DNA of 64,000 nucleotides, from assembly GCA_964188305.1 (NCBI GenBank), contig OZ076886.1. One strand, written 5' to 3'. This document shows, piece by piece, positions 16,001-28,700 of this stretch. The stretch's first letter is position 1, and each line of letters starts with the position of its first letter. The DNA comes from Podarcis bocagei (Eukaryota). The notes below the pieces were generated by a model, which saw nothing but the letters and a program-made list of their open reading frames with translations, had not been told where the DNA came from and did no database searches. Made by a program: the position numbers and the translations under genes.

Positions 16001-16500
16001 ATATTGTTGCTGTTTGTGTGGTAGTTTCTGAAGTTCACCTTAAAATCCAGAATTGCTCCAATCCAGTGGGAGCAGTTGCCCAGCTGATATAAAGCAGCAT
16101 TGGAGGTAGTGGTACACATTTGCCACACCTTTAGCTAAAAATCCAGCTCCAATTTTATACCATCCTGTGGAACAGTATGAAATGACTATGTGGTTGAAAG
16201 CCCCTGTATTCTGCACGGCTCCAGTACTAGCCCACAGCTGCATCTATCCAAAGGGAATGTGCACATTGCAGTGTTAGGGCTTTCCAGGTTGGAAGGAAAC
16301 TTTCTCTCCTCATAGCCCCCAACTGTTCCTCAAGTCATGCGTTTAGTGTAACTATGTACCAGTGTCCCTTCTCTGCTCCTCAGAATATAAACTGCCATTC
16401 TTTTCAGCCCACACCCATTTTAAAACAAATACTGCTGTACAAAATAATATCTGTACTTTCAAAAAAACGACGAAATAAACTATTTACACTGTCTTAATAA
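10079..16500 (+). other. EVI5L: Putative long EVI5L 3'UTR; AATAAA candidates at 11938, ~14832 and 16474
   Basis: U-rich, nearly repeat-free sequence after the stop; distal AATAAA preceded by TGTA elements. The true end needs RNA data. Confidence 0.5.
15412..15547. mobile_element. Palindromic hAT MITE with perfect 8-bp TSD (ccttagaa)
   Basis: TIR caggcatggccaaactt ... aagtttggccatgtctg; TSD at 15404-15411 and 15548-15555. Confidence 0.92.
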
Positions 16501-18584: not shown

Positions 18585-19503
18585 CTATCTCTCTTTCAAA
18601 TCAGAGCCAGTGAAGGCAGTGAAGGTCCTGTGTGAATGTCTGGAGGCGGTTGGAGATTGGATGATGGCTAACAGATTGGGGTTGAATCCTGACAAGACAG
18701 AAGTACTGTTTTGGGGGGACAGGGGGCGGGCAGGTATGGAGGACTCCCTGGTGCTGAATGGGGTAACTGTGCCCCTGAAGGACCAGGTGTGCAGCCTGGG
18801 AGTCATTTTGGACTCACAGCTGTCCATGGAGGCGCAGTTCAATTCTGTGTCCAGGGTAGCTGTTTACCAGCTCCATCTGGTATGCAGGCTGAGACCCTTT
18901 CTACCTGCAGACTGTCTCACCAGAGTGGTGCATGCTCTAGTTATCTCCCGCTTGGACTAATGCAATGCGCTCTACATGGGGCTACCTTTGAAGGTGACCC
19001 AGAAACTACAACTAATCCAGAATGCGGTAGCTAGACTGGTGACTGGGGGCGGCCGCCAAGACCACATAACACCGGTCTTGAAAGACCTACATTGGCTCCC
19101 AGTAAGTTTCCGAGCACAATTCAAAGTGTTGGTGCTGACCTTTAAAGCCCTAAGCAGCCTTGGTCCAGTGGCTCCACCCCTGTCATTCTGCCCAGACACT
19201 GAGCTCCAGCGCCGAGGTCCTTCTGGCGGTTCCCTCACTGCAAGAAGCAAAGTTACAGGGAACCAGGTAAAGGGCCTTCTCGGTAATGGCTCCCACCCTG
19301 TGGAATACTGTCCCACCAGATGTCAAAGGAAAAAACAACTACCAGACTTTTAGGAGACATCTGAAGGCAGCCCTGTTTAGGGAAGCTTTTAATATCTGAA
19401 GGACTATTGTATTTTAATATTTTGATGGAAGCAGCCCAGAGTGGCTGGGGAAACCCAGCCGTTGGGCAGGGTATAAATAATAAATTATTGTATTATTATT
19501 ATC
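18585..19503 (+). mobile_element. 5'-truncated L2-clade LINE (C-terminal RT/ORF2 relic, 3' tail, (TAT)n end)
   Basis: WMMANRLGLNPDKTE, SLGVILDSQLS, HALVISRLD*, LQLIQNAVARLV..DHITPVLKDLHWLPV; in-frame stop and frameshift. Confidence 0.9.
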
Positions 19504-19779: not shown

Positions 19780-22700
19780 CTAGCAGGAGGAAGGAAGAAA
19801 ATGCAGCAGTGCTCCCCACCCGCCCCCAATTGCACTGCAACCATCCATCTCACCACCACACTAACCCCCTTCCAGAGGTAAACAAATGCACCCTCTTCCT
19901 ATTTGCATATGTTCGTTTCTCCAAGTCTTAGCATATTTATAATGTTCCACTTTTAAGTATTGAGATGAAGCAAAACTGCCCTAGCTTGGGTATATTTAAA
20001 ACTGGCTAATCCTGGAGGCAATGAACTGGCTCTCTTGCATACAGCAACCTGCTGTAGTAAGGACAGCTTTCTTGAATTCCTGGCTCTGCCCACTCCAAGT
20101 GCATTTGCATTATGGATGCTTCAAACGAGTCCAGGTATATGCAGAAGGTCCCAGGTTCAGTTCACCAGCATCTCCAGGTATAGCTGGAAGATAACTCTCC
20201 CTGCCTTATATTAGCTACAATAGGTGACTTTTTGGAAGCCTTATTCAGCAGAGGGAAGGGGACTTGCAGGCACCAGGAAGGTCTCAAGGTGCATATGTGC
20301 CTGGTTGCTGAACTGGACACCCATGCAATATGCATTCATTATTATTTAACAAATTTTGTATACTGCTTAGTTGTAGTCAAACATCTAAGGTGCTTATAAT
20401 GTTGAAATTATCAATTAAAGAACCAGTTTGAAATAATTAAACATTGAAAAATAATTAAAAGTTAATATAAGCGTGCACCACTGATTCCATTCACAGCCAG
20501 AGATGGAAATGAGTGCAGAATCAAAGCCTCTGCTCAAATGAAGGATTTCTCAAAAGCCAATGTGTCACCTTACCTGTCTCAGCTGCAGGCTGGCTCCTCC
20601 TCCCGGAAGCCGACTCACCTACGAGTTCAAGGCTGGCATTAAAATTTAGTAATTAAAGCTTTGTTCAGACCGCCTCATTTCAGAGAAAGGTGTGAAAATG
20701 CATGTGCACTGTCTAATAATAAAAAATAACCAGAAATAACAAGCAGACGGGGATCAATATCATGGCTGTGCACATAAATCCCTCTCCCTCCCCTCTGACC
20801 TTTACTTTCCTCCTTTGACTGTCTGGCCTTTTTATCATCCTATTTGTTCTGTTTCTATTTCTTTCTTTTTTCCATGGTGGATGGGTGGACAAGTACAACT
20901 GTGCAAAGGCAGACCAATATGAATAATGATGCAAATTTCCCAGACACATAATTCCCTCCAGACTTTTTTGTGACATTGATTCCAATATGTATTTCAGCTG
21001 TTGCATCTTCGATCGCCTAAGGGTCATGTTTCCCACTCTTATGATCCTTCCTAGAAGCCAACTGCAATGGGGATCATTTGGCTGCCAGCTTCCACCCCAA
21101 GATCCATGCCCATGAGATGGAGGCAGACAGTTGGCAGAAGCCAACCAGCCCCAACCTGGTGCCCTCCAGATGCTTGAGAGGACAACTCCAGGTCCAGGCC
21201 CAGCAAGCATGGCTGGCTAGTGATGAGAGCTAAAATCCAAAACAGCTGGAAGGCAATAGGTTGATGAAAGGTGTCATGATCTATAATTTGGAGTTTTCCC
21301 ATCTCGGACATGAGGCCCAGTCTACCTTTACAGAAATGCTAAGGTGTGCTCCCCCAGGCTTTGCCAAAAATCAATCATTCAAGTAAAATAGATGGTACCT
21401 ACAGCACTGAGGGGAGCCTCCTCATACCCACCTGTATAGGTGTAAATGAACCAGAGCCCAATAGTGAGGCAGATGCCGATGAGGAAGGCTGCAATAGCTA
21501 TCCCAATTACTGCGGGGACCGTCTGGCCTGGCGCAGCTGCAGCTATAGAGAAGCGGGAAATGGGGAGGATGCATGGAGAAAGAGCACGAAAATGCATTCT
21601 CATTCTCTGTCCAGGAAGGGGAGATGGGCCAGGGCCCGAAACGGGGTAATACGGAATGAAAAAGTCTGAGGATCAGAGTTCTTGCTCCAACCCACAGCAG
21701 CAGGAATCCTCAACTCCACTCCCCCCCCCCCCGAGCCAGGAGTAGAATCCCAGTCTAAAACCGATTTCAGTCCCCAAATCCCCGGGAAACAAGGCCAGCA
21801 AGAGATCATGGGGATGTTTGCTTACTTCGGACTACCTGAGTCTTCCGCTTGTGGGCTGCATCCTTTGGTGCTTTTCCTTGTTGTTTGTCTGGGACATTAG
21901 CTGCAGAAAAAGACACCAAAGTCAAGGAAGGAACAGATAATCTGAGGGAGTGTCTGAAGAAAATAGCCTCCGGGTGGCAAGGGGGAGAAAAGGAATGAGT
22001 GCATAACTCTGCCCATCATTGCTACTTTGCTTCACTCAGGATGAACATGTAAGATGTCATTGGCAAAGTCTGAGCTTGTAGCATGGTGAGATCCAAGGCA
22101 TCAATCTCCTGGGTAGGAGATGCTGGTGAACTACAAGCCCCATCATCCCTTGCCATTGGCCATGCTGGCTTGAGGTGATGGGAGCTGGAGTCCAAGAATA
22201 TCTAGAGGGCTACAGGTCCAGCACCTCTGCTCTGGAGAGATGCACTCCAAGACGCTTCCATCTCCCCAGCAAGCAGGACTCCCCCATCCGTTTCTTTCAG
22301 TTCCTCACTCACTCTGCAGGGCAGTTCTCTCCAGCATGGAGCCAGGGTGCTGAACTGCAAGGCCCTCAAGCCAACAACTCTCTTCTAGCTGCTATCTAGA
22401 ACCCACAGGAAAGTACCTGGTTTCGGGCCAGGAGAGGCAGCTCGGAGCGGAGTCTCCACAGTCACTAGCATAGGCTTTGTGATGGTGCGCTGGAAGCGGC
22501 TTGGGACCGCCTCCTCTTCTCCGCTGCAGGCCTCGTTCTCAGACCGACACTGAAACAAAAACCTGCCTCAGAAGAGTGCCTCATCCCAACAGTGGGAGGT
22601 AGGCCTTGGCCTAGTTACATCCCACCTGCGTCTCCATAAGCCCAGCCAGCTCATTTCTACAGCTAACAGGGAGGCTCTTTTGCACAGGCCCATTCCAGAG

Positions 22701-25700
22701 GGTTTCCACCCCTCCAAGGGGTTTCGCTTTCCTCTTGATTCCATCTTTTGGAATAAAGAGGCCTTCCACCCTCAGAGCAGAGATGGACCAAGGATTTCTG
22801 GAAGGGGCCAGTCATAGCTGAGGGGCAAAGCACACAGAGGGGCCCACATTCAACCCCCAGTCAAACATATCAAAGGAAAGACCTCTGCTTGAAACACTTG
22901 AGGGATACTGCCCTTCAGAGGAGGCAGTAATAATAAGCTAAGGGGTAACCAACATGGTGCCCCCCTAGATACCAATTGACTACAATTTTCATCACCCCTG
23001 GCCAATGGCCACACTAGCTGAGGTGCTGGGAATTATGAAGCCAGTGTCATCATCGAGCAGAGGGCACCATTTTGGCTACCTCTGGGCCAAGTGGAGAGCT
23101 TGCTGTGGCATATCAGTTTCCTCCCTAAGCATCCCCAATCAGGAGAGCCTATTCTGAAGCAGTAGTGCTATCAGGCCCTCAGACAGCTGCTAGAAGACAG
23201 GGTTCCCTAGCCCAGGGAGCCAGAGACCTTGGGGATTGCGCCCTTGGGTCTGGCGGAGTCCTGAGACCCCCTGCTGCAGAGGGTCAGACGGCAGTGCAAG
23301 AAGTGGATGGAGGCATTGGACCGGGGTTTCAACACAAAGCTCAGTCGCTGGCGTTCCTGGTACCCCAGAGGCAACGCCTGGGCCTGGCCTGGCAGCTTGG
23401 GTTTCCACAGCCTGACTTGGGCGGCAGCCACGGGACAGCCATGCTGGACCAGCAGATACACCGAGGTCTCTGAAGCATCTGAGGAGCTAGAGATGAAGCA
23501 CTTCTGGATGGTGAAGCTGAGAGACGAGTCATAGGTTGCCAAGGAAGCCTGGAGGAAAAAGGAAACACCATCTAGTCTGTAAACACAAGTGCAAGTTTTG
23601 CTGCCGACGTTTTCTGAATGCTGCATTGAAAAGCACATGAATCTGATCTTTGGAGAGTTTGTAAGTAAACCATTTTTAACTTGCCCCACACATGGTATTT
23701 TCTATGCTAAGAGAAGAGGGGAATTTTGGAAGGAACTTAGAAAGTTATATTCTAAGAATGACAACCTATATTTCCATGCTTTACTTTGTTATTTTAAATT
23801 TCTGCTGGGGTTCTCTCACCAAAGAATACTTGCCCCAGACTTGGTTCTTGGCATCCAGGAATTCTCTTTTTATACCTATTTTTTCATTGCAAACCAACCA
23901 TAAAGTTGGGCCTTGAATTGGGCCTCAGTATGAAATCTGCCTAGTCTATTCCTTGCTCTTTTGCTTACAGATGCATGTTTTGCTTCCCTGGGATGCATGT
24001 TGCCATTCTAAGCTGCTAAAACGTGGTGGCAAATCACCCCTGTTACTTCATCCCTTTGAGAGCTGCAGTGTAAGTTTATCACCCCCCATAAAGCAACAAG
24101 CAGGTCAACTGCCCTGTTTGAGGCTCTTAGAGAGACAGGGAGTGCTGCAAACCACCAGATCTCTGGACAGAGGAGGAATCACTTAGGGACAAGATTCTGG
24201 CGTGTAACTGCTGCATCCAAAGCCAGCTCTTGCATATTCCTCGTCCGCTTTACCTCCACAAAGACGAGGCTGTTGGCTGAGACAACAAAAGGTCCAAGTT
24301 GCTTGGCAAAAGCCTCTGTTTTGTAGAGCTCTAGGTTAAGGAGGGCATTGCCAAGGTGAAGGTAGGGATCCTGAAAGGCCGTTGCAGCTTCTGAGGGAGA
24401 TATCTGGGTTGGAGAAGGTGAAATACAGGAGACCTGCAGGAGAAAAACAGGTCTGTGGAGCGGTATTGATGTGCAATGACAAGAGAATACCCGCCCATCC
24501 ACATCCACATGAAATGGCACTGTAGGAAATAGATTCCCTCTGTCCATCCGGAGATGTCATCCTTGGCTACTCACTCCCTGAGTGTCCTGGTTTTCAAGAA
24601 TAGGCTTCTGGTCCCCAAGACACAAGATAGATTCTGTCCCCTCTGTTTTGGCTGTAGACGGTGGGTAGGTAACGGAACCATCCTCTCCCGCAAAGTCTTG
24701 CCTTGTCACCTCCCAGCCAGCTGTGTTGGCTTCTGCAAAGTGCTGTTGAGAGGCTGTGAAACTGGGAGGATGCAAAAATATGGGCCAAAAGAGTGTTGGC
24801 TCTTCTAGAGGAGGTGTGGCCCCTACAAAGGAAATACAGGTGTGTGGGTGTGATGCAATCATATGCCTTCTACGCTGCTGCTGTTAATCAGAATATGATC
24901 TATTCCAAGCATCACCAGTGTGGCCCCAAAGGAACACATGTGCCCAGCTCACAGAGGCCTTCTCTACAGTCTGCAGGGTACCCTCCCCTCCCAGCACTGA
25001 AATTAGGCTCAGAAGAAGCATTCTATTGGAGCCCATAGAATAGGTTGCAGGAGAGGAGGGCAGGGTACTCACAACAATTTCTCTGTTGCAGACTTGCCCA
25101 TGGGCCCAAGAATGTTGGCAACCCCATATCTGTTCCTTCTGTTACCCAAGTAAAAGGTCTGCACATTCTGACATAATATGGCATGCCTTCCTGTTCTCTT
25201 CCATGGGTTCAGCATTCAGAACAAAGGCAATGTGGCTTCATTTGCCCTTCTTGATTTTACCATTGTAGCCACAGCTGATTTCCTATTTGACACCATTTAT
25301 CATCCCTACGTGAATCCTGATTGGCTGGGATCACATAACGACTAGGAAATAAGCTCTCAAAAGGGTTTGGGAAAATGGCAGTGAAGCAGCAAAATATCTG
25401 TTAACAAATATATGCTGTTGGCCGGTGTGTATGTACCATTTCAGTCCCCTTGGAAGCATAATTTTCATGCTGAAAATGTTTTGATTTGGTGCATTCCTAA
25501 AATAAAACTGGAGGTTGTATAGCCTAGGGTAAAATGGTGCAGGAGGAACTGGAATATAAATGCCAGGAATCTGCAGCAGCGGTCACTAGTGGTTTGCCTC
25601 TAAGCTCTCTGGTGGGCACTTTTCCCATTCATGTCCATTGAAACTCTCCAAACCTACCATTCATCCCAACAAAAAGGAGAAACCTGTTCACCCGCTCAGC

Positions 25701-28700
25701 CTCAACGTAGGACGTAAAGGCAGGCAAATTCTGCTCCGTTGCAAACTGCAAAGGATCGAGGGTCGTCAGCCGAGGGGACGTCCGCTGGGTCACAGTCAGA
25801 GGCAGATCCATTTCTGTGCTGCTGACTGTGACTTTGTGCGAAGCCTAGAAAGGAATCCCAGCCTGAGTTACATATACAAGGCCCAGACATGGAGAGCAGC
25901 AGCAGGCACACCATAAACAAGAGACGGTCCAGGGGAATCAAATAGCAGCATGGAGACAGACTCCCAAGAGGGAGTAGCCTAGTGGGGTGGAGAGTTGGAG
26001 CCAGGAAGTAAGACACCTTGGCTCACTTCAGGAAAAATAATAAGGCTGGAGGAGGAGGAGGCAAGCCTAGAGTTATAGGGAGAATGCAGGGGAAGCTTAT
26101 GGAAGAGGGTTGGCAAAGCTCGCTAGTGGGCCTGTGAAGGCAGGACTTAGCAGAAGGAACCCTCCATAATATAACCCTTATAATAGTATTAAGTCCAGCA
26201 TCTAAAATTACCAAACTGCTTCCTCTAGGAAAGGTTGCAATTCTGCATAATGCATCTACAGTGGTACCTCAGGTTAAGAACTTAATTCGTTCTGGAGGTC
26301 TGTTCTTAACCTGAAACTGTTCTTAACCTGAGGTACCATTTTAGCTAATGGGGCCTCCCACTGCCGCCACGCCACCACCGCATGGTTTCTGTCCTCATCC
26401 TGAAGCAAAGTTCTTAACCTGAGGTACTATTTCTGGGTTAGCGGAGTCTGTAACCTGAAGCGTCTGTAACCTGAGGTACCACTGTATCTGGATTTGAGCA
26501 CATGTGTGCCCTGCTCCCTTCCAGATGTGTGCCACTGCCACCAACTTGGGGAGGGGGAGAGAGAGAAGCGCATTAGCTGAGAGCGTTACAGATCTATACC
26601 CTGCCCCTACCAGGACATGCAGCCGGCCAGTGAGGCGGTGGGTGTGAACCATCCACTCAGCAGCTCCCTCACTCTTCAGTATCAAGATCAGTCCCCAGTG
26701 GGGGGGCCTTCGGACAGCATGAAGTTCCACAGTCAAATGAGCCAGGGTGGGCCTAGAAGAGAGCAGGCTGTCCACCCACCACAACAGGATTAAGCACATG
26801 ATGGAAGACAGCGAAGCCCCACGCCACCCGTCCCCCAACTCAAGAGACCCCTGCCCAATATTCAAGGCCTAATACCAGCCACTGTCACTACTCGTTTTTG
26901 GCTCAAGGTCTCAGTGTCCGTCTGGCCTTGACTTTCGGGGGAAGTGCCATTGCTAAGTGGCAGGGCAACTGCACTGCATGCAGAAGGTCAGAGATTCGAT
27001 CCCCATCATCTCCAGACAGAGCTGAGAAAGACATGGGAGATCTGCTGCCAGTCCGTGTCAGCAGTACTAGGCTAGATGAACCAGCTTCCATGTTCCTGTT
27101 TATATCTTTAACACAAGGGTCACTTATCATACGCAGCTTCTTGCACAGGTTTCATTCTTCCTCACCATCCCCCTTCCCCATCTACACTAAGAACAAGTTC
27201 AACCTCCCTGTTCAAGACATGGCATCTCAATATGAACATTTCGCTACACCCCCCCCCCCCCCGGTTCAACAGCCGCATGCTGAAGCTCCGGCGACACCTG
27301 CCTGATACGCACCTTGGTGCAACTCCTTTGGAGAGGATGATGTGAACTTCAAGGACTTGCGGAGGGTCAGGATGCAGGCAAACTCTCAGAGGCTGGAGTT
27401 GGCACTTGGAGGCAAAGTGCACCGGGGTCAGGAAATTCCTACTTAATCTGCAAGCGGCTGGGGCAATCCTATCTGGAGAAGGAAAGGAATGAAGCATCTG
27501 GACTGAATGGTCACAGAAGAGCTGCTGCGATTTACTCTTTTTTGTTTGCAAGCAATGCAAACTCTTTGGCAACTGCTCTCCAGTTAATACTGGTGAGTCT
27601 TATTTATCTGTGCCGTGTATATATTCCATCTTCCCTCTATGATTGCAGTGCACAGATCTTTCCTTCCTGGATGGTCTCCCTGCCAAGCACTGAGCAGACC
27701 CAGACCTGCACAACTTCTGCAAAGTTACTGCATTAGCCCAGGACCCCAAAGACCAGCTGGCTGCCTTCCTCCTGCTTATCACACTGCAGTAGCGAATATG
27801 GGGAACATGTGTCTCTCCATACGTTGCTGGACTGCAACTCCAATCAGCCCCAGCCAGGGTGGCCAGTGGTCAGGGATGAGGGGAACTGCAGGACACACAG
27901 CCATAATGACACCCTTTCCCTCAGAGCCGATATCTACCCTCATCGCCCATGCCAGCCCCCAGGCGTGTGTAGATTCTGTTGACTCCACGGTATTCAGCCA
28001 GAGAGGTGACCCCTCCATGCTCCCTCCGTGCCCACTTCAGCAGGCGTTTTGGCGTCTTTGGTAAGATGGTCTCAGCAGAAGCCACTGGCCCTGCGGCTGA
28101 AACATTAGAGCCGGGGGAGACCTGTAGATAGGAGGAAGGCAAAGGTAAAATATACTAGCCTGGAGGACCTCCCCACTCTCTGACACCCCACCCTGGGGAG
28201 TGCACTAAGGTTGAACAGTGCTGCACTTTAGTCTGGGAGATCTGGGTTCAAGTTCCACCTCAGCCACAGCCTTAGGCAAGCCTCCCTCAGCCTCAATTAC
28301 CCCCATCTGTAAAATGGGAAGAATAGTAACTTACTACACAAGATGGTTCTGAAGACAAACAGAGGTAGAAAGTATTTTGTTAAAGTGCTATGAAGGTAGC
28401 AAATTAGCTTTTCCATCCACCCTTCCCATAGCTGCCGCTCATCTTCTATGCTTGCGTAGAGTAGGGGCTCCAATGACCCCCTCGGCAGGGCCTGGCTCAG
28501 TGATCCCCATGATGTTCTGCAGGCCCTTTGGCCCTCTATCCCATCTCACCTGGAAGGTCCAGTTTTTTCCAGGGGGAGACAGCAACACCCAACGCACAGG
28601 CTTCTGGGAATACAGCACAAAGATGGGGGCTCTGTCGAGGGGATCTGGGTCCAGAGTTATCAGAGTTACCTGAAAGAGGATCAAGGAGACATGCATGATC

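Follow-up and report, generated by a model that had tools for sequence, protein, structure and literature searches.

The TGFBR3L gene of the lizard Podarcis bocagei encodes a betaglycan-like receptor in which the core of the ZP-N domain is missing through the loss of two internal exons that preserve the reading frame. The gene lies on the minus strand of a 64,000-nucleotide stretch of contig OZ076886.1 (NCBI GenBank assembly GCA_964188305.1), which was analyzed at its full length and is referred to below as the window. TGFBR3L is a paralogue of betaglycan (TGFBR3), with which it shares an architecture of an orphan domain, a ZP-N domain, a ZP-C domain and a transmembrane (TM) segment. In the canonical ZP-N fold, the first of the four cysteines (C1) pairs with the fourth (C4). 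The explanation that accounts best for the results, and which we regard as likely, is that two exons of the ancestral gene, termed B and C here, were lost on the lepidosaur stem, that the remnant of the ZP-N domain now forms part of a flexible tether, and that this state arose by fixation of a variant in which both exons were skipped.

The two exons that flank the loss, termed A and G, follow each other directly in the window (Table 1). Upstream of exon A (248 nt) stands an AG at 24824-24823; the first two nucleotides of the exon finish a codon, and its phase-0 end reads ...ESILCLGDQKPILENQDTQG (24634-24575), followed by GTGAGT (GT at 24574-24573). The 141-nt intron (24574-24434) has a good pyrimidine tract and a CAG acceptor (AG at 24435-24434), after which exon G (180 nt, 60 codons) opens in phase 0 with VSCISPSP and closes with ...SLVFVE, followed by GT. 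This short phase-0 junction, which the first-pass annotation had read from the DNA, is borne out by its GT-AG boundaries and by RNA contigs of four runs from three studies (compared over 22000-27999), all four of which carry the 24575/24433 joint. No RNA contig of the four runs keeps the 141-bp intron, which if retained would read G-VSSQG-stop, with a stop after six codons. Together with the neighboring joints (24254/23548, 25658/24822, 26611/25844, 27313/26767 and 27938/27472), the joined exons form a single uninterrupted reading frame. The contigs are ~97% identical to the window, and their differences yield the residues of the Podarcis muralis TGFBR3L protein (P0073, the reference for residue positions in this study); this identifies the source of the RNA as a congener, not the assembled animal, and it is in this congener that the direct joint between exons A and G, which had been suggested as a check, is seen in transcripts. 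Low-depth RNA contigs (X2 record 7, X1 record 3) also extend beyond exon A, past 24822, into the intron that precedes it (24823-25291) and are probably unspliced pre-mRNA.

The missing part was identified by comparison with the box turtle (Terrapene carolina), for which the 822-residue TGFBR3L protein (P0009) was mapped back onto its gene (locus L001). In the turtle gene, exons A, B, C and G succeed one another, all their boundaries are in phase 0, and B and C together encode the greater part of the ZP-N sandwich, including C2 and C3. The lizard lacks the two symmetric exons B and C, corresponding to 84 codons, and its 141-bp intron replaces 1943 bp of the turtle gene (intron-B-intron-C-intron). 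Exon A matches turtle TGFBR3L with a BLASTP E value of 4e-04, aligned as S-x-x-C-L...N-x-D-x-Q, and exon G with 8e-19, aligned as x-S-C-x-S-P; a multi-species alignment is consistent with the equivalence of both exons to the turtle ends. Since a search of the PDB with exon A gave no match to betaglycan, the equivalence of C1 rests on the alignment of orthologues and not on similarity to betaglycan. Two claims of the first-pass annotation are upheld by this comparison, namely that two internal frame-preserving exons are gone together with the C2-C3 cysteine pair, to which other squamate genomes also testify, and that the exon ends are the strand-A/C1 and strand-G/C4 pieces of ZP-N. In other respects the two orthologues correspond, in exon order and phases, the orphan domain, ZP-C with its six cysteines, the stalk and the TM segment, whereas the turtle retains exons B and C and has a full ZP-N with four cysteines, for which AlphaFold2 predicts a fold.

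Of the ~100-residue ZP-N beta-sandwich (strands A-G), ~27 residues are left in the window, with equivalents of C1 and C4 only, and the exon for C2 and C3 is absent. The open reading frames (ORFs) of exons A and G gave no Pfam match at E values up to 10, including none to the ZP-N profile PF23344. Traces of exons B and C were sought in the introns of the lacertid, Gekko and Anolis, with B and C of five species as tblastn queries and the turtle interval as blastn query, and all matches were at chance level. The string RVFSC inside the 141-bp intron was considered as an exon relic and judged to be coincidental.

TGFBR3L proteins for wider comparison were gathered by a phmmer library search followed by word-indexed searches, which recovered TGFBR3L of 23 squamates, many turtles, the tuatara, lungfish, coelacanth, amphibians and mammals, as well as betaglycans. 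In a maximum-likelihood tree of the ZP-C region only (midpoint root), the window is sister to Podarcis (support 100/100) and lies inside the squamates (98/96), which are joined by Sphenodon (91/90) and then by turtles (95/87). Besides the window, the tetrapod TGFBR3L clade (96/95) contains sequences of marsupials (Petaurus) and eutherians (Loxodonta and Bos), and the betaglycan clade (96/97) stands apart from it. Judged by sequence comparison, the gene in the window is the lacertid TGFBR3L orthologue and is closest to that of Podarcis muralis. The second half of exon G (24433-24254) aligns with the first residues of the crystallized rat betaglycan ZP-C, GNATFNMELYNTDLF..., and the six ZP-C cysteine columns are invariant in the TGFBR3L alignment, as in a betaglycan-like ZP-C. 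In a Foldseek search, the AlphaFold2 model of the P. muralis ectodomain matched the betaglycan orphan domain and ZP-C only: the orphan domain matched the zebrafish and rat betaglycan orphan structures (E ~1e-24), and ZP-C matched 3QW9, 4AJV and 7LBG (E ~1e-10 to 4e-11), with a template-modeling score of 0.77-0.80 to betaglycan ZP-C. A PDB sequence search with the last orphan-domain exon gave only a chance match to Csy4. The TM exon (AVIGIAIAAFLIGICLTIGLWFIY, ~21430-21540), placed by tblastn of P0073, encodes a predicted single-pass TM helix, and a short cytoplasmic tail on separate exons is predicted as well.

The junction between exons A and G is found in all 23 squamate proteins, and PF23344 in none of them, versus its presence in many turtle proteins. 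The junction was also located, gap-free and with canonical splice sites, in the genomes of Gekko japonicus (intron of 548 bp), Anolis sagrei (1108 bp) and Pseudonaja textilis (~1.6 kb). In both Ensembl models of the tuatara, PIACAGGFSQGALR is joined straight to TPCLPQ and PF23344 is absent; strand A has degenerated further by a five-residue deletion, and degeneration of strand A in the tuatara and squamates is to be expected once the domain is gone. A complete four-cysteine ZP-N is present in the lungfish, coelacanth, sturgeon, caecilian and salamander proteins, and the complete domain is therefore ancestral. This cross-species comparison, including that with the turtle, had been suggested for dating the loss, and it places the loss of the ZP-N core probably on the lepidosaur stem, at the latest on the squamate stem. 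No TGFBR3L orthologues of birds or crocodilians were found in the protein searches. The receptor had been described at first as an intermediate between betaglycan and mammalian TGFBR3L. This holds for its architecture but not for its descent, as the domain losses of lepidosaurs, mammals and amphibians are independent according to the tree.

The first-pass annotation had interpreted the remnant as a mini-ZP-N stapled by a C1-C4 disulfide, and an explanation of this type, in which the ancestral disulfide holds strands A and G together in a functional hinge that is under selection, was weighed as a rival and appears doubtful. Both cysteines are present in the window and in all sampled Gekkota, Scincoidea and Lacertoidea, in Pogona and in the tuatara, i.e. 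they have been retained over >200 My of separate evolution; their pairing would be the canonical one, C1 and C4 of the turtle sit in confidently predicted strands, and in lacertids, which lack cysteines at P0073 531 and 551, they are the only extra pair near ZP-C. However, the two cysteines do not share the same fate. C1 is kept in 21 of the 23 squamates and was lost only in Anolis, whereas C4 is kept in 12 (geckos, the skink, the cordylid, lacertids, Rhineura and Pogona), as well as in the tuatara; it is replaced by Arg in Sceloporus and by Phe in Anolis, and is absent from Varanus, Elgaria and all six snake proteins, where it has been mutated or spliced out. As C1 persists without C4 in several lineages, it is not kept merely for pairing with C4. 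Nor is the remnant better conserved than its surroundings: the mean pairwise identity among squamates is 0.51 for the piece in exon A and 0.32 for that in exon G, compared with 0.47 for the upstream linker, 0.52 for the interdomain stretch, 0.68 for the orphan domain and 0.70-0.79 for ZP-C. A proline lies within the former strand A (QKPIL), and the lacertid ectodomain has an odd number of cysteines owing to an extra one at P0073 255 in the orphan domain; with variable extra cysteines at 255, 531 and 551, parity is uninformative and singles out no C1-C4 pair. Furthermore, in the AlphaFold2 model (32-sequence alignment), P0073 400-508, which comprises the whole of exon A and the first third of exon G and includes C1 and C4, has predicted local distance difference test (pLDDT) values of 22-35 and no secondary structure, while the orphan domain and ZP-C mostly have values of 70-95. 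The corresponding turtle segment (21-sequence alignment) served as a control and formed ZP-N strands A-G with pLDDT values of 75-87, with only the exon-C loop disordered. The stapled domain was thus not substantiated, either by the structure prediction that had been proposed as a check or by C4, which, unlike C1, has disappeared from roughly half of the squamates. The remnant is predicted instead to be a vestige within a flexible tether of ~110 residues; a small C1-C4 loop may form in lacertids, but not as a conserved requirement.

Two other explanations would remove the loss itself. If the ZP-N core were merely alternatively spliced, exons B and C would still be present in the genome, diverged or elsewhere in the locus; turtles appear to make both forms, according to predicted isoforms, and contigs cannot establish the absence of rare isoforms. 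This is nevertheless very improbable, as the 141-bp intron has no open frame through it, the larger introns of Gekko and Anolis hold no B- or C-like coding sequence, the B/C segment or a Pfam ZP-N occurs in the protein models of none of the 23 squamate species, and strand A is degenerate, with the proline in squamates and the deletion in the tuatara. A collapse or mis-join in the assembly, or an annotation error, that hides the exons has a negligible probability: the window contains no runs of N, the same junction appears in independent assemblies of four squamate lineages, and the spliced RNA contigs of the three studies, from a related species, concur. Several points nevertheless weigh against the loss-and-tether explanation that we prefer. 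An AlphaFold2 prediction with a 32-row alignment may leave room for a small disulfide-closed loop, and the retention of C1 in nearly all squamates and the tuatara exceeds what is expected of a neutral relic, so that, on its conservation, the segment has some constrained role. The skipped isoforms of turtles and frogs are automatic predictions, and the state of the tuatara is apparently that of Ensembl protein models and not of its genome. In addition, the RNA is that of a congener and contigs drop rare isoforms, so that a minor isoform with extra exons may exist.

With regard to individual cysteines, the ancestral start of exon G (VSCVSPSSTQ) is now intronic in Pseudonaja textilis (L004, ~16019-16050) and reads VSLVFSTSTQ; the annotated acceptor of exon G has shifted by 30 nt in the 3' direction and uses the CAG that belonged to the former TQ codons, which takes the C4 segment out of the protein. 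Most squamates have two extra co-varying cysteines that flank the start of ZP-C (GPC.. and ..DLC..) at P0073 531 and 551, where lacertids, including the window (24287-24289 and 23522-23524), have Phe and Ser, and the cysteine equivalent to 531 is present alone in turtles, the tuatara and marsupials. From its distribution, the 531/551 pair may be a lineage-specific disulfide that was gained and lost within TGFBR3L.

The course of events under the preferred explanation can be outlined as follows. The ancestral gene had the four consecutive phase-0 exons A (linker, strand A and C1), B, C and G (strand G, C4 and the start of ZP-C). On the lepidosaur stem, exons B and C would have been removed or have decayed; the donor of exon A is now joined to the acceptor of exon G across a hybrid intron, which is 141 bp here, with the frame kept. 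The former ZP-N residues left over are too few for a beta-sandwich and, together with the upstream linker, are predicted to tether the orphan domain flexibly to the ligand-binding ZP-C. Tolerance of the loss is suggested by analogy: according to structural work (doi 10.1101/2024.07.19.604101; PMC11865472), the betaglycan ZP-N is dispensable for binding, shows no fixed density, does not bind ligand and has no rigid attachment to ZP-C. By the same analogy, two-site ligand capture would be expected to survive in the tethered lizard receptor.

The proposed route is the fixation of an already viable exon-skipped variant, either via a deletion from intron to intron or via decay of the skipped exons. 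As each of the four exons is in phase 0, any of them can be skipped without a frameshift, and betaglycan shares the exon boundaries that enclose the ZP-N core (Hyla X2 and Ranitomeya isoform models). Skipped forms were found among the isoform models of turtles (P0084, P0090, P0093 and P0225) and of frog betaglycan (P0047 and P0050). The automatic models Trachemys scripta X7 and Mauremys reevesii X8 have the lizard-type junction between A and G, KDMLQ/FSCSSP, with Mauremys X3 being the full form, whereas two Gopherus X4 models skip C and G instead. The Hyla sarda betaglycan X2 model reads ...VEKNCLK/FNCTIP, with B and C skipped, and a Ranitomeya TGFBR3 model skips only the GAG (glycosaminoglycan) exon, C. 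The presence of the junction in predicted turtle and frog isoforms therefore makes fixation of a pre-existing skipped variant the most likely route; if these isoforms are real, a core-less form is viable in relatives, and the lepidosaur state is most simply the fixation of that variant. A more far-reaching version, which we hold to be rather unlikely, is that the junction belongs to a regulated splice isoform that is old and common to both TGFBR3 paralogues, of which the turtle and frog forms would be present-day examples, and that lepidosaurs made it permanent by deleting the skipped exons. Where both cysteines are kept, C1 and C4 would close a loop of ~17 residues, a short hinge governing the distance that can be spanned between the ligand sites of the orphan domain and ZP-C. 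Lepidosaur TGFBR3L would then be a minimal two-site co-receptor of natural origin, in which the ligand geometry is altered.

It had also been proposed that the deletion removed the GAG segment of betaglycan, the ZP-N of which carries two GAG chains (PMC11865472). The homologous exon is indeed gone, and with it the segment in which the acidic Ser-Gly sites of a betaglycan-type proteoglycan would lie. The removal of GAG sites as such did not stand, since no betaglycan-type acidic Ser-Gly motif was found in turtle exon C (VVLWGSKPGAVPRGPPLPVGQAEDSSESIE) or in the lungfish and amphibian TGFBR3L equivalents; only the coelacanth has a stretch, HSGNNGF, that is similar to ESGDNGF of betaglycan. These comparisons suggest that the GAG sites were probably lost before the deletion of B and C, which took the homologue of the GAG exon but probably not functional GAG sites. 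Elsewhere in the protein, the lacertid stalk exon (22417-22551) reads CRSENEACSGEEE, in which the Ser-Gly of CSGEEE has acidic neighbors and recalls GAG attachment motifs; this is found in lacertids only, geckos having KG there, and is not conserved.

TGFBR3L was reportedly characterized in 2021, in mammals only, as a bare ZP-C. The literature searched for TGFBR3L with a ZP-N or an orphan domain yielded no treatment of non-mammalian forms, and the combination of orphan domain, tether and ZP-C was not found described in it for TGFBR3L; the junction between exons A and G is already present in public automatic annotations, and only its interpretation is new. Betaglycan differs in its full ZP-N with two GAG Ser-Gly sites (PMC11865472) and belongs to a separate clade, whereas the lizard protein has neither feature. 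Mammalian TGFBR3L (PMC8673766), for which inhibin B binding and gonadotrope expression have been described in mouse and human only, is an orthologue and resembles the lizard protein in having ZP-C, a TM segment and a short tail but no functional ZP-N. Eutherian TGFBR3L also lacks the orphan domain and both end-pieces of ZP-N, the signal peptide running nearly into ZP-C; a C4-like FxC/ELC motif remains in the marsupial and platypus proteins, and none in eutherians. Amphibian TGFBR3L (Pleurodeles, Geotrypetes and Rhinatrema) belongs to the same family and likewise displays modular domain loss, but of a different kind, with a signal peptide, complete ZP-N and ZP-C, and no orphan domain in the models (P0035, P0027, P0208 and P0227). 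All three domains are present in the lungfish (P0015), turtle and sturgeon (UNVERIFIED_CONTAM) models, and the coelacanth model is a fragment with ZP-N and ZP-C. The TGFBR3L family appears to have shed its domains as modules, by lineage. The lepidosaur form amounts to a natural deletion experiment, which is consistent with the structural work in which the betaglycan ZP-N is not needed for ligand capture, and it offers a ready-made orphan-plus-ZP-C construct for studying the effects of tether length and ZP-N on the binding of inhibin and TGF-beta. It is also a clean case of symmetric phase-0 exons in which exon skipping is followed by permanent domain loss.

Table 1. Exons and related features of TGFBR3L in the window and the corresponding exons of the box turtle gene.
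Feature	Sequence	Coordinates	Strand	Support or content
Orphan-domain exon	window	27313..27472	-	RNA joints, open frame, P0073 mapping
Orphan-domain exon	window	26611..26767	-	RNA joints, open frame, P0073 mapping
Last orphan-domain exon (ASHKVTVSS...NRFLLFVGMN)	window	25658..25844	-	RNA joints; P0073 mapping
Exon A, orphan-to-ZP linker and ZP-N strand A relic	window	24575..24822	-	Splice sites, RNA joints, turtle exon A alignment
C1-equivalent Cys codon TGT (C of ILC)	window	24620..24622	-	
GT-AG phase-0 intron, 141 bp	window	24434..24574	-	Sequence; 141-nt skip in four RNA runs
Exon G, ZP-N strand G relic (VSCISPSP), interdomain stretch and first ZP-C strands (GNALLNLELY...SLVFVE)	window	24254..24433	-	
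C4-equivalent Cys codon TGT (C of VSC)	window	24425..24427	-	
Main ZP-C exon (ASLATYD...AIPK)	window	23228..23548	-	Pfam PF00100 E 4.5e-09; PDB betaglycan ZP-C E 5e-14; RNA joint
Juxtamembrane stalk exon (CRSENEAC...)	window	22417..22551	-	RNA contig cover; P0073 tblastn mapping
Turtle exon A	L001	ends 6305		Encodes ...ALSVACLSERVAVHVNKDMLQ (C1); end ...NKDMLQ
Turtle exon B, 162 bp	L001	6624-6785		AVRL...DPSC...AGC...YQNA (C2, C3)
Turtle exon C, 90 bp	L001	7779-7868		VVLWG...AEDSSESIE, loop
Turtle exon G	L001	starts 8249		FSCSSPAL... (C4)

Two repeats were also noted at the locus. A 230-bp element with terminal inverted repeats (ACAGTGGTACCTCAGGTTA ... TAACCTGAGGTACCACTGT) lies inside a TGFBR3L intron at 26257-26486; in each of the four RNA runs, its contig depths add up to 50,000-180,000 and its flanks are numerous and diverse, an Rfam search with it gave no match, and it looks like a very abundant repeat of the miniature inverted-repeat transposable element type. 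Overlapping ORFs on the plus strand (18610-19353), located in the 3' portion of the TGFBR3L locus, resemble the C-terminal part of a putative long interspersed nuclear element (LINE) reverse transcriptase.

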